Positions 12,795-46,085 of a stretch of DNA of 64,000 nucleotides are shown piece after piece. The notes beneath the pieces are model-generated. The model worked only from the letters and a program-made list of their open reading frames with translations, made no database searches and was not told the origin of the DNA. This DNA comes from Macrostomum lignano (taxonomy: Eukaryota), in contig NIVC01001735.1 of the NCBI GenBank assembly GCA_002269645.1, positions 118,888 to 182,887 of the forward strand. Reading direction: 5' to 3'. Each line of letters starts with the position of its first letter. Within the stretch, counting starts at the first letter, position 1. The position numbers and the translations under genes were made by a program.

Positions 12795-15700
12795 GGCTGA
12801 TTGGGAATTCAACTGACATGGATTCAGAGCTGATTGGGAATTCAACTGATATGGATTCAGCTGATTGGGAATTCAACTGAAATGGATTCAGAGCTGATTG
12901 GGAATTCAACTGATATGGATTCAGCTGATTGGGAATTCAACTGATATGGATTAAGCTGATTGGGAATTCAACTGATATGGATTCAGCTGATTGGGAATTC
13001 AACTGAAATGGATTCAGAGCTGATTGGGAATTCAACTGATATGGATTCAGCTGATTGGGAATTCAACTGATATGGATTCAGCTGATTGGGAATTCAACTG
13101 AAATGGATTCAGAGCTGATTGGGAATTCAACTGACATGGATTCAGCTGATTGGGAATTCAACTGAAATGGATTCAGAGCTGATTGGGAATTCAACTGATA
13201 TGGATTCAGAGCTGATTGGGAATTCAACTGAAATGGATTCAGAGCTGATTGGGAATTCAACTGATATGGATTCAGCTGATTGGGAATTCAACTGACATGG
13301 ATTCAGAGCTGATTGGGAATTCAACTGACATGGATTCAGCTGATTGGGAATTCAACTGAAATGGATTCAGAGCTGATTGGGAATTCAACTGATATGGATT
13401 CAGCTGATTGGGAATTCAACTGACATGGATTCAGCTGATTGGGAATTCAACTGATATGGATTCAGCTGATTGGGAATTCAACTGAAATGGATTCAGAGCT
13501 GATTGGGAATTCAACTGATATGGATTCAGAGCTGATTGGGAATTCAACTGACATGGATTCAGAGCTGATTGGGAATTCAACTGACATGGATTCAGAGCTG
13601 ATTGGGAATTCAACTGATATGGATTCAGCTGATTGGGAATTCAACTGATATGGATTCAGAGCTGATTGGGAATTCAACTGACATGGATTCAGAGCTGATT
13701 GGGAATTCAACTGACATGGATTCAGCTGATTGGGAATTCAACTGACATGGATTCAGAGCTGATTGGGAATTCAACTGATATGGATTCAGCTGATTGGGAA
13801 TTCAACTGACATGGATTCAGAGCTGATTGGGAATTCAACTGACATGGATTCAGCTGATTGGGAATTCAACTGATATGGATTCAGAGCTGATTGGGAATTC
13901 AACTGACATGGATTCAGAGCTGATTGGGAATTCAACTGATATGGATTCAGAGCTGATTGGGAATTCAACTGACATGGATTCAGAGCTGATTGGGAATTCA
14001 ACTGACATGGATTCAGAGCTGATTGGGAATTCAACTGACATGGATTCAGCTGATTGGGAATTCAACTGACATGGATTCAGCTGATTGGGAATTCAACTGA
14101 CATGGATTCAGCTGATTGGGAATTCAACTGACATGGATTCAGCTGATTGGGAATTCAACTGACATGGATTCAGAGCTGATTGGGAATTCAACTGATATGG
14201 ATTCAGAGCTGATTGGGAATTCAACTGACATGGATTCAGAGCTGATTGGGAATTCAACTGACATGGATTCAGAGCTGATTGGGAATTCAACTGACATGGA
14301 TTCAGAGCTGATTGGGAATTCAACTGATATGGATTCAGCTGATTGGGAATTCAACTGACATGGATTCAGCTGATTGGGAATTCAACTGACATGGATTCAG
14401 CTGATTGGGAATTCAACTGACATGGATTCAGCTGATTGGGAATTCAACTGACATGGATTCAGCTGATTGGGAATTCAACTGACATGGATTCAGCTGATTG
14501 GGAATTCAACTGATATGGATTCAGCTGATTGGGAATTCAACTGACATGGATTCAGCTGATTGGGAATTCAACTGACATGGATTCAGCTGATTGGGAATTC
14601 AACTGACATGGATTCAGCTGATTGGGAATTCAACTGACATGGATTCAGCTGATTGGGAATTCAACTGACATGGATTCAGCTGATTGGGAATTCAACTGAC
14701 ATGGATTCAGAGCTGATTGGGAATTCAACTGACATGGATTCAGCTGATTGGGAATTCAACTGACATGGATTCAGCTGATTGGGAATTCAACTGAAATGGA
14801 TTCAGAGCTGATTGGGAATTCAACTGATATGGATTCAGAGCTGATTGGGAATTCAACTGATATGGATTCAGCTGATTGGGAATTCAACTGACATGGATTC
14901 AGAGCTGATTGGGAATTCAACTGACATGGATTCAGCTGATTGGGAATTCAACTGACATGGATTCAGCTGATTGGGAATTCAACTGAAATGGATTCAGAGC
15001 TGATTGGGAATTCAACTGACATGGATTCAGAGCTGATTGGGAATTCAACTGATATGGATTCAGAGCTGATTGGGAATTCAACTGACATGGATTCAGAGCT
15101 GATTGGGAATTCAACTGACATGGATTCAGAGCTGATTGGGAATTCAACTGACATGGATTCAGCTGATTGGGAATTCAACTGACATGGATTCAGCTGATTG
15201 GGAATTCAACTGAAATGGATTCAGAGCTGATTGGGAATTCAACTGACATGGATTCAGAGCTGATTGGGAATTCAACTGATATGGATTCAGAGCTGATTGG
15301 GAATTCAACTGAAATGGATTCAGAGCTGATTGGGAATTCAACTGATATGGATTCAGCTGATTGGGAATTCAACTGATATGGATTCAGCTGATTGGGAATT
15401 CAACTGACATGGATTCAGAGCTGATTAGGAATTCAACTGACATGGATTCAGAGCTGATTGGGAATTCAACTGACATGGATTCAGAGCTGATTGGGAATTC
15501 AACTGATATGGATTCAGCTGATTGGGAATTCAACTGATATGGATTCAGCTGATTGGGAATTCAACTGACATGGATTCAGCTGATTGGGAATTCAACTGAC
15601 ATGGATTCAGCTGATTGGGAATTCAACTGACATGGATTCAGAGCTGATTGGGAATTCAACTGACATGGATTCAGCTGATTGGGAATTCAACTGACATGGA

Positions 15701-18700
15701 TTCAGCTGATTGGGAATTCAACTGACATGGATTCAGCTGATTGGGAATTCAACTGACATGGATTCAGCTGATTGGGAATTCAACTGACATGGATTCAGCT
15801 GATTGGGAATTCAACTGACATGGATTCAGCTGATTGGGAATTCAACTGACATGGATTCAGCTGATTGGGAATTCAACTGACATGGATTCAGAGCTGATTG
15901 GGAATTCAACTGACATGGATTCAGCTGATTGGGAATTCAACTGACATGGATTCAGCTGATTGGGAATTCAACTGACATGGATTCAGCTGATTGGGAATTC
16001 AACTGACATGGATTCAGCTGATTGGGAATTCAACTGACATGGATTCAGCTGATTGGGAATTCAACTGACATGGATTCAGAGCTGATTGGGAATTCAACTG
16101 ACATGGATTCAGAGCTGATTGGGAATTCAACTGACATGGATTCAGCTGATTGGGAATTCAACTGACATGGATTCAGCTGATTGGGAATTCAACTGACATG
16201 GATTCAGCTGATTGGGAATTCAACTGAAATGGATTCAGAGCTGATTGGGAATTCAACTGATATGGATTCAGAGCTGATTGGGAATTCAACTGATATGGAT
16301 TCAGCTGATTGGGAATTCAACTGACATGGATTCAGAGCTGATTGGGAATTCAACTGACATGGATTCAGCTGATTGGGAATTCAACTGACATGGATTCAGC
16401 TGATTGGGAATTCAACTGAAATGGATTCAGAGCTGATTGGGAATTCAACTGACATGGATTCAGAGCTGATTGGGAATTCAACTGATATGGATTCAGAGCT
16501 GATTGGGAATTCAACTGACATGGATTCAGAGCTGATTGGGAATTCAACTGACATGGATTCAGAGCTGATTGGGAATTCAACTGACATGGATTCAGCTGAT
16601 TGGGAATTCAACTGACATGGATTCAGCTGATTGGGAATTCAACTGAAATGGATTCAGAGCTGATTGGGAATTCAACTGACATGGATTCAGAGCTGATTGG
16701 GAATTCAACTGATATGGATTCAGAGCTGATTGGGAATTCAACTGAAATGGATTCAGAGCTGATTGGGAATTCAACTGATATGGATTCAGCTGATTGGGAA
16801 TTCAACTGATATGGATTCAGCTGATTGGGAATTCAACTGACATGGATTCAGAGCTGATTAGGAATTCAACTGACATGGATTCAGAGCTGATTGGGAATTC
16901 AACTGACATGGATTCAGAGCTGATTGGGAATTCAACTGATATGGATTCAGCTGATTGGGAATTCAACTGATATGGATTCAGCTGATTGGGAATTCAACTG
17001 ACATGGATTCAGCTGATTGGGAATTCAACTGACATGGATTCAGCTGATTGGGAATTCAACTGACATGGATTCAGAGCTGATTGGGAATTCAACTGACATG
17101 GATTCAGCTGATTGGGAATTCAACTGACATGGATTCAGCTGATTGGGAATTCAACTGACATGGATTCAGCTGATTGGGAATTCAACTGACATGGATTCAG
17201 CTGATTGGGAATTCAACTGACATGGATTCAGCTGATTGGGAATTCAACTGACATGGATTCAGCTGATTGGGAATTCAACTGACATGGATTCAGCTGATTG
17301 GGAATTCAACTGACATGGATTCAGAGCTGATTGGGAATTCAACTGACATGGATTCAGCTGATTGGGAATTCAACTGACATGGATTCAGCTGATTGGGAAT
17401 TCAACTGACATGGATTCAGCTGATTGGGAATTCAACTGACATGGATTCAGCTGATTGGGAATTCAACTGACATGGATTCAGCTGATTGGGAATTCAACTG
17501 ACATGGATTCAGAGCTGATTGGGAATTCAACTGACATGGATTCAGAGCTGATTGGGAATTCAACTGACATGGATTCAGCTGATTGGGAATTCAACTGACA
17601 TGGATTCAGCTGATTGGGAATTCAACTGACATGGATTCAGCTGATTGGGAATTCAACTGATATGGATTCAGAGCTGATTGGGAATTCAACTGACATGGAT
17701 TCAGAGCTGATTGGGAATTCAACTGACATGGATTCAGAGCTGATTGGGAATTCAACTGACATGGATTCAGCTGATTGGGAATTCAACTGACATGGATTCA
17801 GAGCTGATTGGGAATTCAACTGAAATGGATTCAGAGCTGATTGGGAATTCAACTGACATGGATTCAGCTGATTGGGAATTCAACTGACATGGATTCAGCT
17901 GATTGGGAATTCAACTGACATGGATTCAGAGCTGATTGGGAATTCAACTGAAATGGATTCAGAGCTGATTGGGAATTCAACTGACATGGATTCAGCTGAT
18001 TGGGAATTCAACTGATATGGATTCAGAGCTGATTGGGAATTCAACTGATATGGATTCAGCTGATTGGGAATTCAACTGACATGGATTCAGAGCTGATTGG
18101 GAATTCAACTGACATGGATTCAGCTGATTGGGAATTCAACTGATATGGATTCAGCTGATTGGGAATTCAACTGATATGGATTCAGCTGATTGGGAATTCA
18201 ACTGATATGGATTCAGCTGATTGGGAATTCAACTGACATGGATTCAGCTGATTGGGAATTCAACTGACATGGATTCAGCTGATTGGGAATTCAACTGACA
18301 TGGATTCAGCTGATTGGGAATTCAACTGACATGGATTCAGAGCTGATTGGGAATTCAACTGACATGGATTCAGAGCTGATTGGGAATTCAACTGACATGG
18401 ATTCAGCTGATTGGGAATTCAACTGACATGGATTCAGCTGATTGGGAATTCAACTGACATGGATTCAGAGCTGATTGGGAATTCAACTGACATGGATTCA
18501 GCTGATTGGGAATCATACATGCGCAACCTCCAAAATTCGGTCGGCCATGCGACTTAGTTTTAACAAAAATGCGACGTAGTTTTTGACCAAAAATGCGACT
18601 TACATGTAATAAAAACTGTAAAGCAAAATTAACGCAACTTTGGGTAAACGGCAGGAGTAACTATGACTGTCTTATTAGGGCAAAATGCCTCGTCAGCTAC

Positions 18701-19080
18701 TTAGTAATACTACTTAGGTTTTTTTGGGTGGGCATTTTTGCGACTTCCTTGATTGGCTGCCAAATCGGTCGGCCGGATCGGCCGACTCGGCCGACTGTTG
18801 CGCATGTATGTTGGGAATTCAACTGACATGGATTCAGCTGATTGGGAATTCAACTGACATGGATTCAGCTGATTGGGAATTCAACTGACATGGATTCAGA
18901 GCTGATTGGGAATTCAACTGACATGGATTCAGAGCTGATTGGGAATTCAACTGACATGGATTCAGCTGATTGGGAATTCAACTGACATGGATTCAGCTGA
19001 TTGGGAATTCAACTGACATGGATTCAGCTGATTGGGAATTCAACTGACATGGATTCAGCTGATTGGGAATTCACTGACAT
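12795..19080. repeat. 6.3-kb satellite of mixed 31- and 33-bp units (gctgattgggaattcaactga[c/t/a]atggattca[ga]) filling ACAP intron 2
   Basis: Periods 33 and 31 measured at 12801/12834/12865; interrupted by the MITE at 18514. Confidence 0.97.
18514..18810 (+). mobile_element. hAT-type MITE with an internal 28S-rRNA-like segment
   Basis: TIR CATACATGCGCAAC..GTTGCGCATGTATG; 8-bp TSD TTGGGAAT on both sides; no ORF. Confidence 0.9.
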
Positions 19081-19176
19081 GGAGTCACATGAAATTCATT
19101 CAACGTGGATTTAACATAAATTACATAATAGTCAGTTCCAATCGTCACTGATGCAAGCAGTCATAAATTAACCAAC

Positions 19177-19425
19177 CTTCAACTCTTTGATCGCGTGCAA
19201 ATAGTCCAGACTAGCAATGCAGTACTGGTTGCGATGCAGCTGAGCTAAATTATCCAAATCTGTTTCAACTTTAGTACGCGACTGGCCCAGGCTCTTAGCC
19301 AGCGAAGCCTCATAATCGTCGCTAGCTTTTTCGAAGGCTTTGGCCAGGTCAGCCAGCGGCTGCAGCGAAGTGTTAATAAAAGTCTGCATCCTGGTCTGCG
19401 TGTCGCGAATTGAAGCCACCAAATC
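19177..19425 (-). CDS. ACAP: ACAP exon 2 of 5 (BAR)
   Basis: Acceptor ctcttcccaaacag, donor GTTGGT; 249 nt; AFEKASDDYEASLAK..SLDYLHAIKEL resembles the ACAP BAR. Confidence 0.82.
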
Positions 19426-19606
19426 CTGTTTGGGAAGAGTTTTGGCAAATATCAAAGCGACAGTCAGTCCTGATAACCTACTTATTCTAATTCCATTGGC
19501 TAGCATAAAAGCAGATATTCGCAGGACTGTCCCGCAACCAGCGGTGCAGCCATTCTACCGATTCGCAGATACTGTACATCTACACACGACAATTTTCGTG
19601 CACAAG

Positions 19607-19897
19607 CATACATGCGCAACAGTCGGCCGAGTCGGCCGACCGATTTGGCGGCCAAACAAGGAAGTCGCAAAAATGCCCACCCAAAAAATACCCAAGTAGT
19701 AGTACTAAGTAGCTGACGAGGCATTTTGACTTAATAAGACGGTCATAGTTACTCCTGCCGTGTACCCAAAGTAGCGTTAATTTTGCTTTACGCTAGGTTT
19801 TTTTACACGTAAATCGCATTTTTGGCCAAAAACTACGTCGCATTTTGTTAAAACTAAGTCGCATGGCCGACCGAATTTTGGAGGTTGCGCATGTATG
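19607..19897 (-). mobile_element. Second copy of the rRNA-containing hAT-type MITE, in opposite orientation
   Basis: Same TIRs; 8-bp TSD TGCACAAG (19599-19606 and 19898-19905); internal sequence is the near reverse complement of 18514-18810. Confidence 0.9.
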
Positions 19898-21927: not shown

Positions 21928-22213
21928 CATATATGCACAAACCCCCTGATTTGCACTGGTCATGCGACTTACTTTTTGACCAAAAATGCAACTTACTTAT
22001 GAAAGAAACCCTAGAGCAACATTAATGCAATTTTGGGTAAATGGCAAGAGTAACTATAACTGTTACTCCTAACTGTTACAAGGGCTAAATGCTTCATCAT
22101 CTAATTAGTACTACATCTGTATTCTTTGGGGTGGGCATTTTTGCGACTTACCCCTAGTCTACCATAATTTAGTGGCCAGATCGGCCAAGTTGGCTAGCAG
22201 TTGCACATGTATG
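21928..22213 (+). mobile_element. Older diverged copy of the rRNA-containing MITE
   Basis: Degenerate TIRs catatatgcacaaac..gttgcacatgtatg; flanks ATTATACT/ATTATATT (7/8); internal blocks colinear with 18514-18810. Confidence 0.75.
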
Positions 22214-25430: not shown

Positions 25431-25780
25431 CATACATGCCTAACACCTGTCCAACCTATCCAAACCAGATAGGTGAAATCGCCGCTAGCCAAGGTAAGTC
25501 GCAAAATCAAACATGCAAAAAACAAAAAACAAGGGTAAGAAAAAAGAAGAGGAAGAGAAAAAAATAAAGAAAGAAGTAAGAGAAGAGAGAGGGGAAAAAG
25601 GAAAGAGAAGAAAAGAAAAAATGCAAGAAAATTCATATACAAAATGATAATTAAGTTGCAATTGGGGGAGCAAAGTTGCAATCAGGAGGAACTAAGTCGC
25701 AATTGGGAGAAACTAAATCACAAATCTAGACAAAACTAAGTTGCACCAGATAGGTAAAATTTTGAGGTTAGGCATGTATG
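25431..25780. mobile_element. hAT-type MITE, second subfamily (different interior)
   Basis: TIR CATACATGCCTAAC..GTTAGGCATGTATG; 8-bp TSD CCTATAAG (25423-25430 and 25781-25788). Confidence 0.85.
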
Positions 25781-29334: not shown

Positions 29335-30265
29335 CAGACCTTCAATACACTCAGACCCTCAAAAGACACACCCAGACCCTCAATATATATACAGTCAGCC
29401 CCTCAATAGGCACCCAGACCTTCAATACACTCAGACCTTCAATACACTCAGACCTTCAATACACTCAGACCTTCAATACACTCAGACCCTCAAAAGACAC
29501 ACCCAGACCCTCAATATATATACAGTCAGCCCCTCAATAGGCACCCAGACCTTCAATACACTCAGACCTTCAATACACTCAGACCCTCAAAAGACACACC
29601 CAGACCCTCAATATATATACAGTCAGCCCCTCAATAGGCACCCAGACCTTTAATACACTCAGACCTTCAATACACTCAGACCCTCAAAAGACACACCCAG
29701 ACCCTCAATATATATACAGTCAGCCCCTCAATAGGCACCCAGACCTTTAATACACTCAGACCTTCAATACACTCAGACCCTCAAAAGACACACCCAGACC
29801 CTCAATATATATACAGTCAGCCCCTCAATAGGCACCATACATGCGCAACCTTGGGATTCTCTCGGCCGTTTCTATTGGCAACACACACATGTAAGTCGCT
29901 ATTGGCTGAGAGCAGTCACGTGACTACTATTCTGTCCAATAGCGACTTACATGTGTGTGTTGCCAATAGAAACGGCCGAGTGAATCCCAAGGTTGCGCCC
30001 AAGCATGATAGGCACCCAGACCTTCAATACACTCAGACCCTCAGTAGACACACTCAGACCTTCAATAGGCACTCAGACCCTCAATAGACACACTCAGACC
30101 TTCAAAAGACACTCAGACCTTCGATAGACACACTCAGATCTTCAATAGGCACACTCAGCCCCTTTACAGGCACTCAGACCCTCAATAGACACACTCAGAC
30201 CCTCAATTGACACACTCAGCCTCTCAATAGACACACCCAGACCCTCAATAGACATCACAGACCTT
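29335..30265. repeat. Compound cagacc(t/c)tcaata-based minisatellite with ~100-bp higher-order units in CPOX intron 2
   Basis: Repeated cagaccttcaatacact and cagaccctcaatatatatacagtcagcccctcaataggcac blocks. Confidence 0.88.
29836..30007. mobile_element. Fold-back hAT-type MITE (third subfamily)
   Basis: Left TIR CATACATGCGCAAC; 8-bp TSD ATAGGCAC (29828-29835 and 30008-30015); whole element is a near palindrome centred on gtcacgtgac. Confidence 0.85.
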
Positions 30266-30759: not shown

Positions 30760-30809
30760 GTGCGCTAGTGATCTAGCTATTGGCACTAGGAGCTCTAGAT
30801 AAGATTTCC

Positions 30810-31168
30810 TCAAGCTGCTGGGCAACTCGCCAGCCTCCCAGATCCTCAGCTGCTGGGCCACCCGCCAGCCTCCCAGATCCACAGCTGCTGGGCCACCCGC
30901 CAGCCTCCCAGATCCACAGCTGCTGGGCCACCCGCCAGCCTCTCAGATCCACAGCTGCTGGGCCACCCGCCAGCCTCTCAGATCCACAGCTGCTGGGCAA
31001 CCCGCCAGCCTCCCAGATCCTCAGTTGCTGGGATACCCACCAGCCTCCCAGATCCTCAGCTGCTGGGCAACCCGCCAGCCTCCCAGATCCTCAGCTGCTG
31101 GGCAACCCGCCAGCCTCCCAGATCCTCAGCTGCTGGGCAACCCGCCAGCCTCTCAGATCCTGAGCTGC
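30810..31168. repeat. 35-bp minisatellite (gctgctgggccacccgccagcctcccagatcctca) just 3' of CPOX
   Basis: gctgctggg at 30849 and 30884. Confidence 0.9.
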
Positions 31169-31727
31169 TCGTTAATCTTCTTAGCATAAGTCAGTCCTGA
31201 AAAATATGTTATAAAGTGTAACCACTCGATTTGTGAGTTTTGCTAATCATCGTCTTATCTATTACTTTTTCATTACATATACACTCTGGCGCTGGTTTTC
31301 CCTAGTTTGAATTGGTGCTCTTTTGCTTATACTATGCGCATATTTGCATCCTGTGTAGTTTCCAGTTTAGCGACCAAGAGATTCATTGATAATTTGACAG
31401 CAATCACTTAATTAATGCACTTAGTTATATGCGCTTTAATGTGCATTTTTATTGCCCTAAATATACGTTATTTCCTAATTAATCTTTCTAATGCTTCAGC
31501 TTTACTCATAGAATGTGTTTTTTATCGGAAAGCTTGTTTCGCAAATATCTGGATTGTATTTTACCCCTAATTCTGCATTAAAAATGAACAGGGTCTGGAT
31601 GCTTAGTAAAGCATATTGGGTCGCATTTTCCTGGTTTATATTTTTTTAACCAGACAATTACTTACAAGTCAGGCATAGCAGGCTTTAGTTTGATCAATAC
31701 AAGCATTAGACAGGCAACTTTAGTTTG

Positions 31728-34215: not shown

Positions 34216-34254
34216 GTACAGTGCAGCTTGGATTGCTCAAGGCTACCGCCAGCA

Positions 34255-34600
34255 TCCCAGTTCCTCAGTTGTTGGGTCAATTGCCACCCTCCCCCATCCT
34301 TAGTTGCTGGGCCACCGCCAGCCTCCCCGATCCTCAGTTGCTGGGCCAGCCTCCCCGATCCTCAGTTGCTGGGCCAGCCTCCCCGATCCTCAGTTGCTGG
34401 GCCAGCCTCCCAAATCCTCAGTTGCTGGGCCACCGCCACCCTCCCCGATCCTCAGTTGCTGGACCAGCTTCCCCAATCCTCAGTTACTAGGCCAGCCTCC
34501 CCGATCCTCAGTTGCTAGGCCACCGCCACCCTCCCAGATCCTCAGTTGCTGGGCCACCGCCACCCTCCCAGATCCTCAGTTGCTGGGCCACCGCCAGGCT
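34255..34600. repeat. Variable 28-35 bp minisatellite (gatcctcagttgctgggcc..) in macrodomain intron 2
   Basis: Tandem units related to the 30810-31168 array. Confidence 0.85.
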
Positions 34601-34657
34601 CCCAATCTCCATCATAAATATCGGGCAATTTCAGCATCCCAAAACATGCCCGCCCAG

Positions 34658-35300
34658 GTACGTGCTGCACACGGTCGGGCCAATGGGCTCCGGTGACAAA
34701 GCCCTGAGAAGTTGCTACAGCCGCTGTCTGGAATTAGCGCGTCAGCACGGCCTCACCAGCGTCGCTTTCCCCTGCATCAGCACCGGAGTCTATGGCTTCC
34801 CGGCTGAACGAGCGGCCAAAATTGCCTTGGAGACTGTGCGCGATTTTCTAGCCAACGACAAGTACGGCGAGAAAATTGAGCGCATCATATTCTGCGTGTT
34901 TCTCGATGCGGACTACCGCCTGTACACCCAGCTGCTGCCCGAGTACTTCCCCACTAAGCGACTGCCCACCAAGAAGCAGAAGGAAGAGCAGGAAGCGGCC
35001 GCTGAGACATCCGCTCCTGCCGGTGAGACATCCGCCCCTGCCGGTGAGACACCCGCTCCTGCTGGCGAGACATCCGCCCCTGCCGGTGAGACATCCGCTC
35101 CTGCCGGTGAGACATCCGCCCCTGCTGGTGAGACATCCGCGCCTGCTGGTGAGACATCCGCCCCTGCTGGCGAGACATCCGCCCCTGCTGGTGAGACATC
35201 CGCCCCTGCCGGTGAGACATCCGCCCCTGCCGGTGAGACATCCGCCCCTGCCGGTGAGACACCCGCCACTGCCGGTGATACCACCCAGCCAGCCACTTAA
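34658..35300 (+). CDS. MACROD: MacroD-type macrodomain exon 3 of 3, with APAGETS repeat tail
   Basis: PAR|YVLHTVGP join; SVAFPCISTGVYGFP; IIFCVF; TAA stop. Confidence 0.92.
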
Positions 35301-37514: not shown

Positions 37515-38342
37515 TCGGTCGCGATTTTAACTGCGTGTTGGTTCTCTCTACTAAAGTAAGCAGGTGGCTTAAGCAAAATTTATGTCCTGTCTAGACCTGG
37601 AGAGCCGCCTAACGTCTAAAACCCTCTCTTTTGAAGTTCGGTGTATGACCGAAGTTCTTTTTTTATGCCATAGACTATAACATTAAACCTACATGATAAC
37701 TAAGACCTATTCAACAACAAAACAAGCATGAAGTACTTTCTCAATCATAAAATGCTAATGTAGAACTAATTGGATGAATTCTGTAGATTTTATACTTAGT
37801 GGAAGCAATATTACGAGTATACTGCAGTTAAAACATTAACAGAGCCTATCTGACAAGATTATAATAATAACTTGTCGTTAAGTTCGGGGATTAAAACTAC
37901 ACCTTAAGGCAAATACACAATAGAGACAAAGAAGAATTAGTTGGGCTCGAAAATAATGCTATTGAAGTAGTATATACAAACACAACACTACAACGTACTG
38001 TACATGTAAGACTGACGAAGTAGGCATAAACGTATAAGAACCCAAGTAAACAAAAGCTACTGTTATAAGCACACGTTGAAGCTAAATTGCCATGGGTGTG
38101 TTTTTCTATACAAACTCTGCATAACCCTCTTGTGGTTTTAGGGTAGATCTTAGGCTTTTGTTTTAGCTCTCGAGCACAAGCTGTAGCTAACCTTTCGTTC
38201 GGATGAAATATTTGACAGAAAGCTGGAAGTTGATGGAATTCAAACATGGCGAGTCTTTTAATGACTTGAAAGGTGTCAAGAAATGCACGTTGAACCAATG
38301 CGAGTGTATTTAGAATTTTATATTGCAATAATTTGACCACAA

Positions 38343-38975
38343 GCCCTATTCCACTCGCCCCTCAATGTACACACAGCTTGACCAGAGCCGTATTCCACTC
38401 GCCCCTCAATGTACACACAGCTTGACCAGAGCCCTATTTCACTCGCCCCTTAATGCAGACACAGCTTGACCAGAGCCGTATTCCACTCGCCCTCAATGTA
38501 CACACAGCTTGACCAGAGACCTATTTCACTCGCCCCTCAATGTACACACAGCTTGAACAGAGCCCTATTCCACTCGCCCCTCAATGTACACACAGCTTGA
38601 ACAGAGCCCTATTCCACTCGCCCCTCAATGTACACACAGCTTGACCAGAGACCTATTTCACTCGCCCCTCAATGTACACACAGCTTGAACAGAGCCCTAT
38701 TCCACTCGCCCCTCAATGTACACACTGCTTGAACAGAGCCCTATTCCACTCGCCCCTCAATGTACACACAGCTTGACCAGAGCCGTATTCCACTCGCCCT
38801 CAATGTACACACAGCTTGACCAGAGCCCTATTTCACTCGCCCCTTAATGCAGACACAGCTTGACCAGAGCCCTATTCCACTCGCCCCTCAATGTACACAC
38901 AGCTTGAACAGAGCCCTATTCCACTCGCCCTCAATGTACACACAGCTTGACCAGAGCCCTATTCCACTCGCCCCT
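38343..38975. repeat. 44-bp minisatellite (agccctattccactcgcccctcaatgtacacacagcttgaccag)
   Basis: tcaatgtac at 38537 and 38581. Confidence 0.93.
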
Positions 38976-39621
38976 CCAAAACACACGGCCTTGATTAGCC
39001 CGATTTCATGGACGCCGAATTGTACAGATTTATATTATTGGAAATTTGTTTTGCCCGGCAATTTACAGCATTTTATATGAGCTTTATTGCAGGTCAGAAC
39101 TCTATACGAGCTCTGCATAATCCTCTGTGTTTTAAGGTAGATCGTAGGCTTTTGTTTTAGCTCTCGAGCACATTAATTGTAGCTAGCTTTTTTTGGATCG
39201 GATGAAATATTTGACAGAAGGCTGGAAGTTGATGGAATTCAAACATGGCATGTATTTTAATGGCTTGAAAGGTGTCAAGAAATGCACGTTGAACCAATGC
39301 GAGTGTATTTAGAATTTTATATTACAATAATTACTGTTACAAAAAAGAAGTAATGCCAACAGGTGTTAAAAAGCACGAAAAATTAGGAATACGATCGAAT
39401 AGCTATTTTGTATTGATTTGATACACTTTAAGTGCAAGATACAATCGAACTGAAACATAAAATATACGAACTTCTACTTGTACAGGTGTAAAATGAATAA
39501 AACTGACAATACATGCTTGCATTTAAGCCGAGGCTAGTGAAAGTGAAACGGATGTGACATGCAGTTCAAAACAGCAAGTCTGCAAAACACGAGTACAGTA
39601 CATTAGTGCCATACGGTGAGT

Positions 39622-40449
39622 TCACTGCTCTGTGGCCTTCTCCGTTTCCATGGGAACGTCCTTCAGCTGCGGCTGCTCCCGAGCTGCCGGAGCCTCGAAC
39701 GGCGCCTCGATGCACAGCCGGCCATCGTGGCTGAGCTTGCTCACCACCTGGTCCAGCTTGGTGCCGTCGGGCAGCTGGTAGATTCGCTCCAGCCGCTTGT
39801 GGACCCGCTGCCCGCCGGCCTCCTCCTTGTGCTCCGCCTCCACCAGCACGCAGTCGCCCTGCTGTCGCACGCGAATCTCGTCCGGCTTGAACTCGCGCAC
39901 CGACAGCTCCGCCTTGAACCGCTTGCTGCCATCGTCCGCCTCCACCAGCTGGCCGGACCCCTCAGACTGCAGGTCGCCTCGCAGCAGGCCGCGCAGCTCG
40001 TCCCACACGGAGTCGCCCTGCGGTTTCTGCTGCTGCTGCTGCTGCTCCTGCTGCTTCAGCTGCTGCTGCTTCTGCTGCTCCTTGAACGGCGCCTGCAGCA
40101 CCAGCATGCCGTCCCGGGTGAAGCCGCTGTTCAGCTTCTCTGCGTCCACTTCCTCCGGCAGCTCCACCGTCCGCTTCACCTCCGTCACGTCCTCGCCGTT
40201 CTCCAGCCGCGCCACCACCCGCACCTTCCGCTCCTCCCGCTTCACCGACACGTCCTTCGGCGAGAAGCCGCGAAGGTCCACAGTCCGGCTCCACTGACGC
40301 GGTCGCCTCGGACCTCTGTGCCGCAGCAGCTGCACCAGCGGGTCATACTCCGGCGTCAGCCAGTCGTCCAGCTCGCTCATGGCTGCCACGAGCGGCAGAG
40401 AGTGCGAGAACGGCGTGTACACGTTGCTCGGTGCGATCCACAGAGACAT
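39622..40449 (-). CDS. Small heat-shock protein with two alpha-crystallin domains, copy A
   Basis: VDLRGFSPKDVSVK..LPEEVDAEKLNSGFTRDGMLVLQAP and LSVREFKPDEIRVR..YQLPDG..LSHDGRLCIEAP; ATG chosen downstream of TATA. Confidence 0.92.
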   Translation of the reverse strand: MSLWIAPSNVYTPFSHSLPLVAAMSELDDWLTPEYDPLVQLLRHRGPRRPRQWSRTVDLRGFSPKDVSVKREERKVRVVARLENGEDVTEVKRTVELPEEVDAEKLNSGFTRDGMLVLQAPFKEQQKQQQLKQQEQQQQQQKPQGDSVWDELRGLLRGDLQSEGSGQLVEADDGSKRFKAELSVREFKPDEIRVRQQGDCVLVEAEHKEEAGGQRVHKRLERIYQLPDGTKLDQVVSKLSHDGRLCIEAPFEAPAAREQPQLKDVPMETEKATEQ

Positions 40450-40571
40450 GCTTGCTGTGTCGCTTGTAAATGATAGAGTTTGGCGATTGATTCGCTTTGC
40501 TTGAGATTGCTTTGCTTGCGGTTGCTTTGTGTGCTCGAATCCTGCCTCACTCTCGGATCCAGCTGTCTCGC

Positions 40572-40747
40572 TTTTATAGACTGGCACTGAGGACGCTTCT
40601 CGAATTTTCTCGCCCACTGACTCATTCTGGAAATTTCTAGAAATCGAGCCGCCTACCCAAATTTAGACAGCAAAATGTTCATATTTCTACTGTTAGTAGA
40701 TGAAACGCGCGTGCCTGTTTATCGAATTAGAAAATTCTAGAACTTTC
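40572..40747 (-). promoter_or_regulatory. Heat-shock promoter of copy A (TATA and HSE clusters)
   Basis: TATAAAA 40572-40578 on minus; nGAAn/nTTCn arrays at 40625-40642 and 40730-40747. Confidence 0.85.
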
Positions 40748-41605
40748 TGACTGTGGCTACGCCAAAAGTAAACATGTAAACAGGCCAAAGCAAAACTTGT
40801 TTACGAGACAAAGTAGCATACGCTCGTGCATTCGAAAAAAGGATTGCCTTCGAATGACGCTTACGTATTAGCGAAAATATTTGTGTAACAAAGGCGGGTT
40901 TGCGCTTGTTGCGGCCAGTGGCACGTTCAATGGTGAGCAGCGGCCGGGGGTAGGCCTGGGTACTTTCAGTTTGGCCGCTGCCCCATTGGTACTTGCATCC
41001 TTTCTCATTGCTTGTTGAATAAATTTGTAGCCTAGCTCATACATAAATCTCAGTAAAAACGGCCATGATCTCTACTTTAAAAAACTAATCATGTTTTGGC
41101 ATTCTATTTCGAGTATATTAAGCTCAGATATTCTCTGGTATGGACGGGCTTAAGAGGCTCAAGAGGTTGAAGGTTGAATGAAACATTTTGGACAGAAATA
41201 GTCGCTTTTGCAGATTTTCTATTGTATTTTTGGCAGTCTTGGCAAGCCTTAAACTGCAACATCAGTCTATGGGCCAGGCTGCAGTGAGCATCAGAGGAAA
41301 AGCAACTCAGGAGCCCCAGGCACAAGCGCAAAGAACTGAGAATTTCAACAAAGTTCAATTTCAACACAAGTAACTTCTATTTACTAACAAGAAAGCGCTT
41401 GTGCATCGAAAGAAAGGGGCAAAGGCCGAAAATTGTCTATGGCAATCATCAACCAATGAAAAGGCACGGGGGGGAACTGGATGCAAAAGAGTCAAAAACG
41501 AAAATAGCCAGAGCCAGAATAGCAATCCATTCTATTCATTCATCCATGGCTCCATCCCGCTGCCACTGCATAAAGCACAATCAGCCCTGGCAGTGCACAG
41601 AAGCC

Positions 41606-42448
41606 ATGGTCTCCGTTGAGTTCAACTGCGCCAACCTCAACCACACGATCGACAAGGTGGCCAAGTGGATGGCCATGTCCGACTCGCAGGTCTGCCTGTT
41701 CGCAAACGACACTTCCGTCTCCATTCCGTCGTCATTGTCGACGAACTCGGCAGGCAAGCGGGGCCGGCAGGTGCTCATCGACCGGCTGAAGGGCGACGCG
41801 GTGAGCCGCATGAAGTCGCTGCTCCGGAGCACGGCCAGCCAGCAGAACAACCACAACGAGTTCAAGAGGAAGTCCGGCGACAGGCGCTCCGCCGTCATGG
41901 ACTCGTGCAGCTCCGACAGCTCCGGCGCGACGCTGAACCGCAACCGGAACAACCGGCACGGCACCGAGGCGGAGCACCGGCGCAAGACGCACTCGGACAG
42001 CCGGCACAGGCGCCAGTCGCAGCCGTCCAACAGCCACTCGGCTGCCATGCAGCGCAGGGACAGCGGCGACGGCAGCGGCGACTTCAAGGAGGACAAGTAC
42101 CTCGAGCGCATCATCGAGCGGGCCACTCAGGAGATTCGAGTCGCAATCTACAAGCTCAGCGCCGAGAACAAGCTGCCGGAGAAGTGCCACCTCAAGATGA
42201 AGCTGTCCATCAAGCCGCAGCGGGCAGCCAGCGAGGCCAACAGCCCGAAGGAGCAGCACGGCCGGCATCGAGGCGGCGCCCGAGGCAGCAGAGACGAGGA
42301 CGAAGGACGCCACCGGGTGTCGAACTCCGGGCGTCACAGGACCTCGGAGAGAGACGGCAGGGGCAAGTCGGACAGGGAGAAGCGGGCCAGCTCGACGTCA
42401 AACAAGCGGGAGCAGCGCGAGCAGCGGAAGGACAAGCGGAAGCGCTGA
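41606..42448 (+). CDS. Orphan Ser/Arg/His-rich protein in the palindrome spacer; 5' end uncertain
   Basis: GC3-rich open frame like neighbouring genes; ORF is open from 41399 but composition changes near ATG 41606; no family recognised. Confidence 0.55.
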   Translation: MVSVEFNCANLNHTIDKVAKWMAMSDSQVCLFANDTSVSIPSSLSTNSAGKRGRQVLIDRLKGDAVSRMKSLLRSTASQQNNHNEFKRKSGDRRSAVMDSCSSDSSGATLNRNRNNRHGTEAEHRRKTHSDSRHRRQSQPSNSHSAAMQRRDSGDGSGDFKEDKYLERIIERATQEIRVAIYKLSAENKLPEKCHLKMKLSIKPQRAASEANSPKEQHGRHRGGARGSRDEDEGRHRVSNSGRHRTSERDGRGKSDREKRASSTSNKREQREQRKDKRKR

Positions 42449-43231
42449 GCCGTTAGTTGAGAAGCCTCTGAGCTTTTCACCGCTGCTTCTGCTTGGCTCT
42501 GAAAACTGCAACTGAGAATGGCGCTGAATGCTGCTCAGCCAGTTTACTGAAGTCTTAATTTTTAACAATAAGTCTCGTACGGTCCAATATTCCCTTTGCT
42601 GTGCTGGAAAAGGTTGAGCTGCCTACTGGGCTGCCGATACACGCGGACCGCCAGCGCGAATGCCATCCTCAGCTTCACTTTTTAACTCCTGACACCTGCT
42701 GATCTAAGCATCATGACTTTCAATTATATACTCCACGCAACAGTGTGCCATCAATATTAGTAGCGCTTTGAGCAGTGTGGAGGCCTGGGAAAAGAAATAT
42801 TTATTTACTCACAATTGTAGGAAAAGATGGCTTGCTTTCGCAGCTTAAAATACACAATTTACGCGCTACTTCCTGTTACTAATGGGGACGCATTTTTATT
42901 TAATACCACTACAACTAGAATTTCTTTTGCTTTTGTTGAACGAGAAGAATAGACTATCAGCTTTTTCCCATAACGCTATTACGAAAAGGGGATGAAACTT
43001 CAGTAGATGCATGTACAGAGTCACTGCATTTAATTATTGGCTCAATAGGTCATGGTCAACTATGGTCACATGCTTCCCGTTTCAGTATTCGTAAATGTTC
43101 ACAGTATGCTCACCGCAACGAGAAAGCGACAGACAATTTTTTATATCACTCAAAATATTAAAAAGAAACGGCCGTTTCATCTACTAACAGTAACAGCCTG
43201 TTTACATGTACTTTAGGCGTAGCCACAGTCA

Positions 43232-43407
43232 GAAAGTTCTAGAATTTTCTAATTCGATAAACAGGCACGCGCGTTTCATCTACTAACAGTAGAAATATGA
43301 ACATTTTGCTGTCTAAATTTGGGTAGGCGGCTCGATTTCTAGAAATTTCCAGAATGAGTCAGTGGGCGAGAAAATTCGAGAAGCGTCCTCAGTGCCAGTC
43401 TATAAAA
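43232..43407 (+). promoter_or_regulatory. Heat-shock promoter of copy B: three HSE clusters and TATA
   Basis: GAAagTTCtaGAAttTTC 43232-43249; TTCtaGAAatTTCcaGAA 43337-43354; GAAaaTTCgaGAA 43370-43382; TATAAAA 43401-43407. Confidence 0.88.
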
Positions 43408-43529
43408 GCGAGACAGCTGGATCCGAGAGTGAGGCAGGATTCGAGCACACAAAGCAACCGCAAGCAAAGCAATCTCAAGCAAAGCGAATCAATCGCCAAA
43501 CTCTATCATTTACAAGCGACACAGCAAGC

Positions 43530-44357
43530 ATGTCTCTGTGGATCGCACCGAGCAACGTGTACACGCCGTTCTCGCACTCTCTGCCGCTCGTGGCAGCCAT
43601 GAGCGAGCTGGACGACTGGCTGACGCCGGAGTATGACCCGCTGGTGCAGCTGCTGCGGCACAGAGGTCCGAGGCGACCGCGTCAGTGGAGCCGGACTGTG
43701 GACCTTCGCGGCTTCTCGCCGAAGGACGTGTCGGTGAAGCGGGAGGAGCGGAAGGTGCGGGTGGTGGCGCGGCTGGAGAACGGCGAGGACGTGACGGAGG
43801 TGAAGCGGACGGTGGAGCTGCCGGAGGAAGTGGACGCAGAGAAGCTGAACAGCGGCTTCACCCGGGACGGCATGCTGGTGCTGCAGGCGCCGTTCAAGGA
43901 GCAGCAGAAGCAGCAGCAGCTGAAGCAGCAGGAGCAGCAGCAGCAGCAGCAGAAACCGCAGGGCGACTCCGTGTGGGACGAGCTGCGCGGCCTGCTGCGA
44001 GGCGACCTGCAGTCTGAGGGGTCCGGCCAGCTGGTGGAGGCGGACGATGGCAGCAAGCGGTTCAAGGCGGAGCTGTCGGTGCGCGAGTTCAAGCCGGACG
44101 AGATTCGCGTGCGACAGCAGGGCGACTGCGTGCTGGTGGAGGCGGAGCACAAGGAGGAGGCCGGCGGGCAGCGGGTCCACAAGCGGCTGGAGCGAATCTA
44201 CCAGCTGCCCGACGGCACCAAGCTGGACCAGGTGGTGAGCAAGCTCAGCCACGATGGCCGGCTGTGCATCGAGGCGCCGTTCGAGGCTCCGGCAGCTCGG
44301 GAGCAGCCGCAGCTGAAGGACGTTCCCATGGAAACGGAGAAGGCCACAGAGCAGTGA
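43530..44357 (+). CDS. Small heat-shock protein with two alpha-crystallin domains, copy B
   Basis: Translation identical to copy A; ATG 43530 lies downstream of TATA, whereas the ORF-track start 43362 lies upstream. Confidence 0.92.
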   Translation: MSLWIAPSNVYTPFSHSLPLVAAMSELDDWLTPEYDPLVQLLRHRGPRRPRQWSRTVDLRGFSPKDVSVKREERKVRVVARLENGEDVTEVKRTVELPEEVDAEKLNSGFTRDGMLVLQAPFKEQQKQQQLKQQEQQQQQQKPQGDSVWDELRGLLRGDLQSEGSGQLVEADDGSKRFKAELSVREFKPDEIRVRQQGDCVLVEAEHKEEAGGQRVHKRLERIYQLPDGTKLDQVVSKLSHDGRLCIEAPFEAPAAREQPQLKDVPMETEKATEQ

Positions 44358-45004
44358 ACTCACCGTATGGCACTAATGTACTGTACTCGTGTTTTGCAGA
44401 CTTGCTGTTTTGAACTGCATGTCACATCCGTTTCACTTTCACTAGCCTCGGCTTAAATGCAAGCATGTATTGTCAGTTTTATTCATTTTACACCTGTACA
44501 AGTAGAAGTTCGTATATTTTATGTTTCAGTTCGATTGTATCTTGCACTTAAAGTGTATCAAATCAATACAAAATAGCTATTCGATCGTATTCCTAATTTT
44601 TCGTGCTTTTTAACACCTGTTGGCATTACTTCTTTTTTGTAACAGTAATTATTGTAATATAAATTTCTAAATACACTCGCATTGGTTCAACGTGCATTTC
44701 TTGACACCTTTCAAGCCATTAAAATACATGCCATGTTTGAATTCCATCAACTTCCAGCCTTCTGTCAAATATTTCATCCGATCCAAAAAAAGCTAGCTAC
44801 AATTAATGTGCTCGAGAGCTAAAACAAAAGCCTACGATCTACCTTAAAACACAGAGGATTATGCAGAGCTCGTATAGAGTTCTGACCTGCAATAAAGCTC
44901 ATATAAAATGCTGTAAATTGCCGGGCAAAACAAATTTCCAATAATATAAATCTGTACAATTCGGCGTCCATGAAATCGGGCTAATCAAGGCCGTGTGTTT
45001 TGGA

Positions 45005-46085
45005 GGGGCGAGTGGAATAGGGCTCTGGTCAAGCTGTGTGTACATTGAGGGCGAGTGGAATAGGGCTCTGTTCAAGCTGTGTGTACATTGAGGGGCGAGT
45101 GGAATAGGGCTCTGGTCAAGCTGTGTCTGCATTAAGGGGCGAGTGAAATAGGGCTCTGGTCAAGCTGTGTGTACATTGAGGGCGAGTGGAATACGGCTCT
45201 GGTCAAGCTGTGTGTACATTGAGGGGCGAGTGGAATAGGGCTCTGTTCAAGCAGTGTGTACATTGAGGGGCGAGTGGAATAGGGCTCTGTTCAAGCTGTG
45301 TGTACATTGAGGGGCGAGTGAAATAGGTCTCTGGTCAAGCTGTGTGTACATTGAGGGCGAGTGGAATACGGCTCTGGTCAAGCTGTGTCTGCTTTAAGGG
45401 GCGAGTGAAATAGGGCTCTGGTCAAGCTGTGTGTACATTGAGGGGCGAGTGGAATACGGCTCTGGTCAAGCTGTGTGTACATTGAGGGACAAGTGGAATA
45501 GGGCTCTGGTCAAGCTGTGTGTACATTGAGGGGCGAGTGGAATAGGGCTCTGGTCAAGCTGTGCGTACATTGAGGGGCGAGTGGAATAGGGCTCTGGTCA
45601 AGCTGTGTGTACATTGAGGGGCGAGTGGAATACGGCTCTGTTCAAGCTGTGTCTGCATTAAGGGGCGAGTGAAATAGGGCTCTGGTCAAGCTGTGTGTAC
45701 ATTGAGGGGCGAGTGGAATAGGGCTCTGGTCAAGCTGTGTGTACATTGAGGGGCGAGTGGAATAGGGCTCTGTTCAAGCTGTGTGTACATTGAGGGGCGA
45801 GTGGAATAGGGCTCTGGTCAAGCTGTGTGTACATTGAGGGGCGAGTGGAATAGGGCTCTGGTCAAGCTGTGTGTACATTGAGGGGCGAGTGGAATAGGGC
45901 TCTGTTCAAGCTGTGTGTACATTGAGGGACAAGTGGAATAGGGCTCTGGTCAAGCTGTGTGTACATTGAGGGGCGAGTGGAATAGGGCTCTGGTCAAGCT
46001 GTGTGTACATTGAGGGGCGAGTGGAATAGGGCTCTGGTCAAGCTGTGTGTACATTGAGGGGCGAGTGGAATAGGGCTCTGGTCAT
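45005..46085. repeat. 44-bp minisatellite, reverse complement of 38343-38975 but longer
   Basis: gggcgagtggaatagggctctggtcaagctgtgtgtacattgag units. Confidence 0.93.

Follow-up and report, generated by a model that had tools for sequence, protein, structure and literature searches.

This locus raises two linked questions: how a piece of the 28S ribosomal RNA (rRNA) gene came to lie inside short repeated elements in and around a protein-coding gene of the flatworm Macrostomum lignano, and why this piece departs from the rRNA gene mainly at the site targeted by R2, Pokey and I-PpoI. The window, by which we mean the whole 64,000-nucleotide stretch analysed, belongs to NIVC01001735.1 (assembly GCA_002269645.1, Mlig_3_7), and contig L013 is its exact reverse complement. 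L012 and L014 are homeologous contigs of the same assembly, ~98% identical; L012–L014 were recovered via three 90%-cluster members of an ACAP-like gene. At ~98% identity, the three contigs match the subgenome structure published for M. lignano, a neopolyploid, in which S, L1 and L2 diverge by 1.4–2.4% (PMC10733133). Our best explanation for the locus is a hAT-like family of MITEs (miniature inverted-repeat transposable elements) that would carry a once-captured 28S piece as passive cargo. We give this explanation, taken as a whole, a probability of about 0.72.

A MITE family with a 28S-derived segment

Three copies of the element were found in the window. Copy 1 (18514..18810, plus strand, 297 bp) has exact 14-bp terminal inverted repeats (TIRs) and a perfect 8-bp target-site duplication (TSD), TTGGGAAT, at 18506-18513 and 18811-18818. 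It scored 348.9 bits in an nhmmer search with a profile built from the three window copies. Copy 2 (19607..19897, minus strand, 291 bp) lies in intron 1 of the ACAP-like gene, has exact TIRs and the TSD TGCACAAG, and is 94.8% identical to copy 1; its orthologs at L012:10474-10774 and L014:10470-10751 show 98.6–100% identity. Copy 3 (21928..22213, plus strand, 286 bp) is located ~1.5 kb upstream of the same gene and is flanked by ATTATACT/ATTATATT. It represents a diverged subfamily, with ~73% identity to copy 1 and with 3 and 1 mismatches in its TIRs. The profile search yielded no further full-length copy in the 64-kb window. Copy 4, full-length and with the TSD TTTAGTAG, is found on a homeologous contig (L011:755-1005). 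Copy 5 is truncated and lies just past the window's left edge (L013:32040-32215); it is also present in L012.

The family ranges from 251 to 301 bp and contains no open reading frame (ORF). Its 14-bp TIR (CATACATGCGCAAC on the left, GTTGCGCATGTATG on the right) is exact in copies 1 and 2 and has 1–3 mismatches in copies 3 and 4. The 8-bp TSD is perfect in copies 1, 2 and 4, as well as in two related elements described below, and matches at 7/8 positions in copy 3. The interior consists of subterminal repeats and the 28S piece. In copy 1, the left subterminal repeats GCGAC(T/G)T (18549..18601, plus strand) start at 18549, 18571 and 18595. The right-end GCGACTT-type repeat (18740-18746) has the same orientation and is part of the box GGGTGGGCATTTTTGCGACTT, which does not vary among the window copies and reaches 98% identity between subfamilies (box conservation values 0.89 and 0.98). 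At least three subfamilies, with ~70–73% mutual identity, are represented by the five independent copies. The TIRs, the perfect 8-bp TSDs, the lack of an ORF, the several copies and an empty site support the assignment of copies 1–5 to a MITE family; the TIR/8-bp-TSD structure had been recognized in the original prediction. The invariant 21-mer gave 0 matches in JGI metagenomes. The TIR combined with GCGACTT gave 8 matches there, approximately the number expected by chance, and the three that were inspected (L003–L005) turned out to be one GC-rich locus unrelated to the MITE.

The same prediction had aligned the interior of copy 1 by hand with a 28S sequence. The 28S sequence used there agreed letter for letter with positions 2244-2307 of the eukaryotic large-subunit (LSU) rRNA consensus in Rfam (LSU_rRNA_eukarya). 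The 64-mer at 18642..18705 (plus strand) was as quoted, and 54/64 of its positions were identical to 28S without gaps (blastn E = 4.9e-16). This module covers the helix 69 to helix 71 (H69–H71) region, spanning TTAAGG/TAGCC. The predicted recurrences were also found. The module of copy 2 (19704..19767, minus strand) is 51/64 identical ungapped (E = 3.1e-12). The diverged module of copy 3 (22035..22109, plus strand) is ~73% identical in a gapped alignment (E = 8.3e-7); 11 nt within it are duplicated in tandem, and TCATCTAATTAGT is retained exactly as in 28S. When the window was searched by blastn with a 113-nt Rfam consensus, no other 28S-like stretch appeared below E = 2.7. A 26-mer of the module, with up to 3 mismatches allowed, occurred 3 times, versus 0 times in 100 shuffles.

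In Infernal comparisons with LSU covariance models, copy 1 scored 16.5 bits (E = 0.076) and copy 4 scored 24.4 bits (E = 0.00041), with 14.2 bits also obtained, and cmscan picked the eukaryotic LSU model over the bacterial, archaeal and organellar ones. At the Rfam gathering score (50 bits), the whole window produced no match; the LSU match emerged in E-value mode only. The expectation of a significant LSU match was borne out by the blastn E values and by copy 4, but not at the gathering score, which none of these three scores reached. A low covariance score is to be expected, as G12A and C28G, two changes shared by the family, both break pairs of the H69 stem without compensation. With scores far below gathering and broken H69 pairs, the module reads as a decayed fragment of a 28S gene, and not as an rRNA gene. 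The cmscan alignment hinted at ~35 further homologous bases upstream, to about model position 2209. This extension was not significant against shuffled controls (p = 0.15 local, 0.09 anchored), and we consider it possible.

The sub-gathering Rfam score would also suit a chance similarity, or an rRNA-derived short interspersed nuclear element (SINE) or retro-pseudogene. We regard this probability as practically negligible and rejected the reading: the blastn E value is 5e-16, the module occurs in 3/3 window copies and in two elsewhere, and the elements are bounded by TIRs and by TSDs of a constant 8 bp, with no poly(A) or tail resembling those of long interspersed nuclear elements. The retroposon structure of SINE28 was likewise not found, as the MITE has TIRs, fixed 8-bp TSDs and no A-tail.

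The antisense strand of the copy 5 module (L013:32134-32170, minus strand) weakly matched the C/D-box small nucleolar RNA (snoRNA) family snoR442 (E = 0.9, 15 bits). Both the copy 5 antisense and snoR442 are complementary to the same 28S stretch, AGUAACUAUGACU. The match almost certainly just reflects where the module came from, 28S, and does not mark a snoRNA.

Mobility, ends and the proposed route of capture

With the MITE profile, copies 2 and 3 were detected in each of the three contigs at orthologous places, and copy 1 in the window's contig only. Copy 1 interrupts the ninth unit of a 31-bp satellite, counted from the exon-2 side (TGAATCCATGTCAGTTGAATTCCCAA, the MITE, then ATTCCCAATCAGC). 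In L012 and L014, the same array runs unbroken from the same anchor over 20 or more units, with a single ATTCCCAA as the empty site; around copy 1, ATTCCCAA is duplicated. Since the site is empty in both homeologs, copy 1 was inserted after the divergence of the subgenomes or, less simply, was lost twice. The unbroken satellite of the other two subgenomes, which lacks copy 1, shows that the MITE family moved recently. No empty site was demonstrable for copy 4, whose flanks are without a counterpart in the window and whose stretch is not collinear between subgenomes. A look-up for a further subgenome copy of the L12 region gave the same contig only. The satellite itself (12796-19087), into which copy 1 is inserted, comprises ~190 units in intron 2 of the ACAP-like gene.

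Two other elements of the window share these ends. A different non-autonomous element (25431..25780, plus strand, 350 bp) has the related TIR CATACATGCCTAAC, AAGT(C/T)GC subterminal repeats and the TSD CCTATAAG; the transposase of the 28S MITE, or one related to it, probably acts on this element too. In a third, short element (29836..30008, plus strand), with the TSD ATAGGCAC, the left TIR is exactly CATACATGCGCAAC, the right TIR is degenerate and the interior is palindromic. Neither contains a 28S module. Their interiors, one purine-rich and of low complexity, the other palindromic, are unrelated to that of the 28S MITE, and AAGTCGC-type repeats are shared. The existence of at least two further MITE families whose ends are the same or nearly so, but whose interiors are unrelated, shows that the interior is interchangeable cargo. 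In the L014 region homeologous to the third element (257-395 and 580), the right TIR is intact at 395, and a second TIR-like site is located at 580.

The 8-bp TSD was present in 6/6 elements with these ends. T was found at position 2 in 4/6 and A at position 7 in 5/6 of the TSDs, i.e. at 9/12 diagnostic positions of nTnnnnAn (binomial ~0.002 at p = 0.3, in a small sample). Hermes prefers nTnnnnAn targets, and its asymmetric subterminal repeats are bound by BED domains (PMC10368747). The subterminal repeats of the MITE are asymmetric as well, with three GCGAC(T/G)T on the left side and a single one towards the right end, in the same orientation, and the TIR is short. The combination of short TIRs, 8-bp nTnnnnAn TSDs and asymmetric subterminal repeats is shared with hAT-derived MITEs (Mar in Drosophila, BniHAT in Brassica) and with the Hermes ends. 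From these features, a hAT assignment is plausible, and likely but not established. Membership in the piggyBac/Pokey group was rejected, as the TSDs are 8 bp long and none is TTAA.

The window holds one autonomous-looking DNA transposon of ~2.97 kb (52032-55001), with 127-nt TIRs that are 95% complementary and start with CACGCCTATGCAGAAGC, and possibly with a 4-bp TGGT duplication. Its intact 686-aa ORF (52433-54493, minus strand) is the sole transposase-like gene in the window and has no Pfam match; homologs with 30–51% identity occur on short contigs of JGI, ENA, Logan and NCBI assemblies. The element may represent an unclassified transposase family. As the autonomous partner of the MITE, this ORF was rejected: its own 127-nt TIRs are unrelated to CATACATGCGCAAC, and it has no Pfam domain.

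On our best explanation, a transposase encoded elsewhere in the genome would move the MITEs in trans. It would recognize the 14-bp TIR CATACATGCGCAAC and probably also the subterminal GCGACTT repeats, and make 8-bp staggered cuts at nTnnnnAn targets; the enzyme would most likely be of the hAT type. The founder would have gained, in one event, 64 nt of a 28S gene (possibly up to ~100 nt), comprising helices 69–71 and TTAAGG/TAGCC. The likely route is that ribosomal DNA (rDNA) was copied as filler during the repair of an internally deleted element. The fragment would then have persisted as cargo with no function while the family divided into at least three subfamilies, and the module is probably passive.

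Several observations weigh against this explanation. hAT TIRs typically start with 5'-YARNG, a rule with exceptions, and the TIR of the MITE starts with CATAC. Neither an autonomous element with these TIRs nor a hAT transposase turned up in the window and ~50 kb of further loci, ~110 kb of M. lignano sequence overall. In both respects, as well as in its rDNA cargo, the family differs from the hAT-derived MITEs named above. Of the predicted rDNA capture by a hAT derivative, the 28S-derived interior of a MITE stands, and the hAT part is plausible only. The capture junctions show no clear microhomology. The rRNA reference was the Rfam consensus (RF02543, model positions 2244-2307), with the same bases assumed for the M. 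lignano 28S gene, and the family statistics rest on n = 5 independent copies, three in the window and two on neighbouring or homeologous contigs. Finally, the module is 0.78–0.83 identical between subfamilies, compared with ~0.3–0.56 for the other non-box interior and ~0.72 for the family average.

This last comparison appears to leave room for constraint on the module, marginally so against the ~0.72 average. The module could be functional for the element or the host, as a source of 28S-related small RNAs, as a protein-binding or nucleolar-association site, or as a cis element for propagation, and the inverted copies 1 and 2 around exon 2 of the ACAP-like gene could give double-stranded RNA (dsRNA) containing it. 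We consider such a function very improbable, and there is no sign that the module acts as RNA. The low-identity segments that make the module stand out are partly indel-ridden, the rRNA pairs are broken and uncompensated, and the related MITE families do without a module.

The lesion at the R2/I-PpoI/Pokey site

The five-copy majority consensus of the module, GGGTAAACGGCAGGAGTAACTATGACTGTCTTATTAAGGCTAAATGCCTCGTCATCTAATTAGT, is 56/64 identical to 28S and differs from it at module positions 12, 28, 34-38 and 41. Six of these eight differences fall within 8 nt at TTAAGG/TAGCC, a clustering that was equalled in 74 of 200,000 random placements (scan p ~4e-4). Outside this 8-nt window, 54/56 positions of the consensus are identical to 28S. 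In copy 1 alone, five of the ten mismatches lie within TTAAGGTAGC, as the original prediction had stated (hypergeometric P = 0.006, the window having been named beforehand). The intact site is TTAAGGTAGCC; 28S reads CTTAAGGTAGCC, and the MITE reads CTTATTAAGGCT. The lesion can be written as six substitutions, or as a TTA duplication, a TAG deletion and one C>T substitution. We take the exact cut positions of R2 and I-PpoI to lie at TTAAGG/TAGCC.

The copies have in common the 3' boundary of the module (after TTAGT and before ACTA), G12A, C28G (A at position 28 in copy 5) and the rewritten site. Other ancestral 28S states are retained differently by the subfamilies: TCATCTAATTAGT in copies 3, 4 and 5 versus TCAGCTACTTAGT in copies 1 and 2. 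The simplest reading would be one capture and one ancestral complex lesion in the common ancestor of the family, the site having been altered in the donor rDNA unit, in the founder, or soon after capture. As the lesion is common to all copies, it was a single event that preceded amplification, and recurrent selection against cleavage is therefore not demonstrated. The idea that the cut site had been lost under selection fared accordingly: the mismatches do concentrate at the site in the five-copy consensus (6/8), but the shared lesion gives no sign of recurrent loss. It is as compatible with a founder effect or one complex mutation as with selection at the level of the lineage.

Lineage-level selection, the idea of the original prediction transferred to the founder, would mean that an intact TTAAGG/TAGCC is cut or invaded by R2, a Pokey-like piggyBac element or an I-PpoI-like nuclease, so that only a founder with a dead site could amplify. 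The placement of 6/8 consensus differences in the 8-nt site, next to a remainder that is 54/56 identical to 28S, is what this would produce. R2 is present in Platyhelminthes (PMC5035012), and Pokey of Daphnia uses the same 28S TTAA, with preferred flanking bases that match GGTAGCCAAATGCCT / TTAAGGTAGCCAAATGCCT (PMC3849761). However, a lesion common to all copies is one historical event (n = 1), and a single complex repair event, with the TTA duplication and the TAG deletion, accounts for the cluster without any selection. In addition, rDNA targeting is not universal in the phylum, given that two flatworm R2 families (Schmidtea, Clonorchis) are without target specificity (PMC5035012), and R2, Pokey or a homing endonuclease was not met with in M. 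lignano, where no search was aimed at them. We hold this kind of selection to be unlikely.

The lesion could instead be the fossil of a damaged donor rDNA unit, i.e. of a 28S pseudogene in which this site was already damaged when the fragment was copied. The gapped consensus, CTTA+TTA+AGG-(TAG)-C, compared with CTTAAGGTAGC in 28S, contains a CTTA-TTAAGG that resembles an imperfectly healed piggyBac-type TTAA duplication. Its position coincides with the Pokey TTAA and the R2 site, and the missing TAG is at what we take to be the R2 nick position. These are 3-nt features, the ungapped six-substitution reading is equally possible, and piggyBac excision is normally precise; we regard the donor fossil as quite improbable. 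That the site was destroyed by no accident, whether because the founder copy was disabled against an rDNA-specific nuclease or transposon or because it inherited a scar from the donor rDNA unit, is likewise unlikely.

Genomic context, known systems and significance

Copies 1 and 2 bracket exon 2 (19174..19428, minus strand) of the ACAP-like BAR-PH-ArfGAP-ANK gene, which was located by tblastn of its protein P0034. They are mutually inverted, ~95% identical, and their arms are 86–100% complementary. The pair flanks the exon in this subgenome only, as the two homeologs lack copy 1. In pre-mRNA, the two copies could pair into a ~290-bp dsRNA stem that includes the module, with exon skipping, back-splicing or circular RNA as possible outcomes. 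Inverted pairs of this kind might also feed 28S-related dsRNA into small-RNA pathways.

Minisatellite arrays crowd the introns across the window; in addition to the 31-bp satellite, units of 17, 22, 23, 29, 44 and 66 bp were found. Array lengths vary among the three subgenome copies, in which the ACAP-like gene spans 12.8, 10.3 and 8.7 kb. Coding or near-coding tandem repeats occur at 34245-35300 and 30807-31169, and a macro-domain ORF ends in (ETSAPAG)n derived from a 21-bp array. Related 28-35-bp arrays (..CCTCAGTTGCTGGGC..) lie upstream of the macro-domain exon and in the adjoining CPOX gene region. A large inverted duplication (38333-46084) contains two small heat-shock ORFs (39622-40617, minus strand, and 43362-44357, plus strand), which are 100% identical and have two HSP20 matches each. 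On either side of the pair lies the same 44-bp minisatellite (38333-38976 and 45003-46084), its two arrays oppositely oriented, and the centre of the duplication is occupied by a lysine/arginine/serine-rich ORF of 349 aa (41399-42448). The window also contains a single-exon GNAT gene, whose product matches an M. lignano protein with 100% identity.

Of the known systems, Pokey and its derivative mPok (piggyBac, Daphnia) offer a close comparison. Like the M. lignano family, they are class II elements with MITE derivatives, contain internal rDNA-derived sequence and involve the same 28S TTAA site (PMC3849761, PMC10946416). Pokey, however, makes TTAA duplications instead of 8-bp TSDs, its cargo consists of intergenic-spacer (IGS) and internal transcribed spacer 2 repeats instead of 28S coding sequence, and it inserts into the 28S site, whereas the MITE carries a copy of that site. 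The IGS repeats of Pokey evolve in concert with the rDNA, and no such exchange is evident in the MITE. The mammalian SINE28, the 5S-derived SINEs and the Cassandra/Ajax terminal-repeat retrotransposons in miniature (TRIMs) are also mobile elements with an rRNA-gene module. They differ in being retrotransposons, and the 5S modules are RNA polymerase III promoters, whereas the 28S piece of the MITE is without a known promoter role. An actinopterygian R2 lineage has 28S-derived sequence in the 3' untranslated region of a mobile element (PMC5035012). That element is a non-long-terminal-repeat retrotransposon residing in rDNA, with the piece linked to a target-site shift, whereas the MITE is dispersed in genic introns.

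Class II elements are also known to take up host fragments or filler DNA, as in Pack-MULE-type transduplication and in the gap-repair fillers of Ac/Ds and P elements. In these and in the M. lignano family, host sequence sits in a non-autonomous DNA transposon; here, it is a very short, universally conserved rRNA core, and the mechanism would be analogous by inference. A 2024 review of transposable-element modules derived from rDNA lists SINEs with 5S promoters, Cassandra/Ajax TRIMs, SINE28 and Pokey/mPok, and no class II element with 28S coding sequence (PMC10946416). Significant internal rDNA similarity common to the family members, by which such elements are defined in that review, was found in the present family. 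In our literature searches, no class II element or MITE with 28S coding sequence came up, nor did any account of M. lignano MITEs.

Non-autonomous DNA transposons are well known to capture host fragments, and only the rewritten R2/Pokey site could raise the significance of the family beyond this. The MITE yields spurious "LSU rRNA" matches in repeat and rRNA annotation of the M. lignano genome, and such insertions are usable as subgenome-specific markers for the S/L1/L2 haplovariants. The 28S MITE would add a class II case with 28S coding sequence to the short list of rDNA-module transposons, in a laboratory model flatworm. The captured piece spans the most frequently attacked rDNA site of eukaryotes, and that site alone is rewritten, which offers a cheap handle for testing the past or present activity of rDNA-specific elements in Macrostomum. 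If the site was indeed disabled in the founder or is a scar from the donor, the scattered copies of the family would document conflict at the rRNA-gene site that is targeted most heavily.

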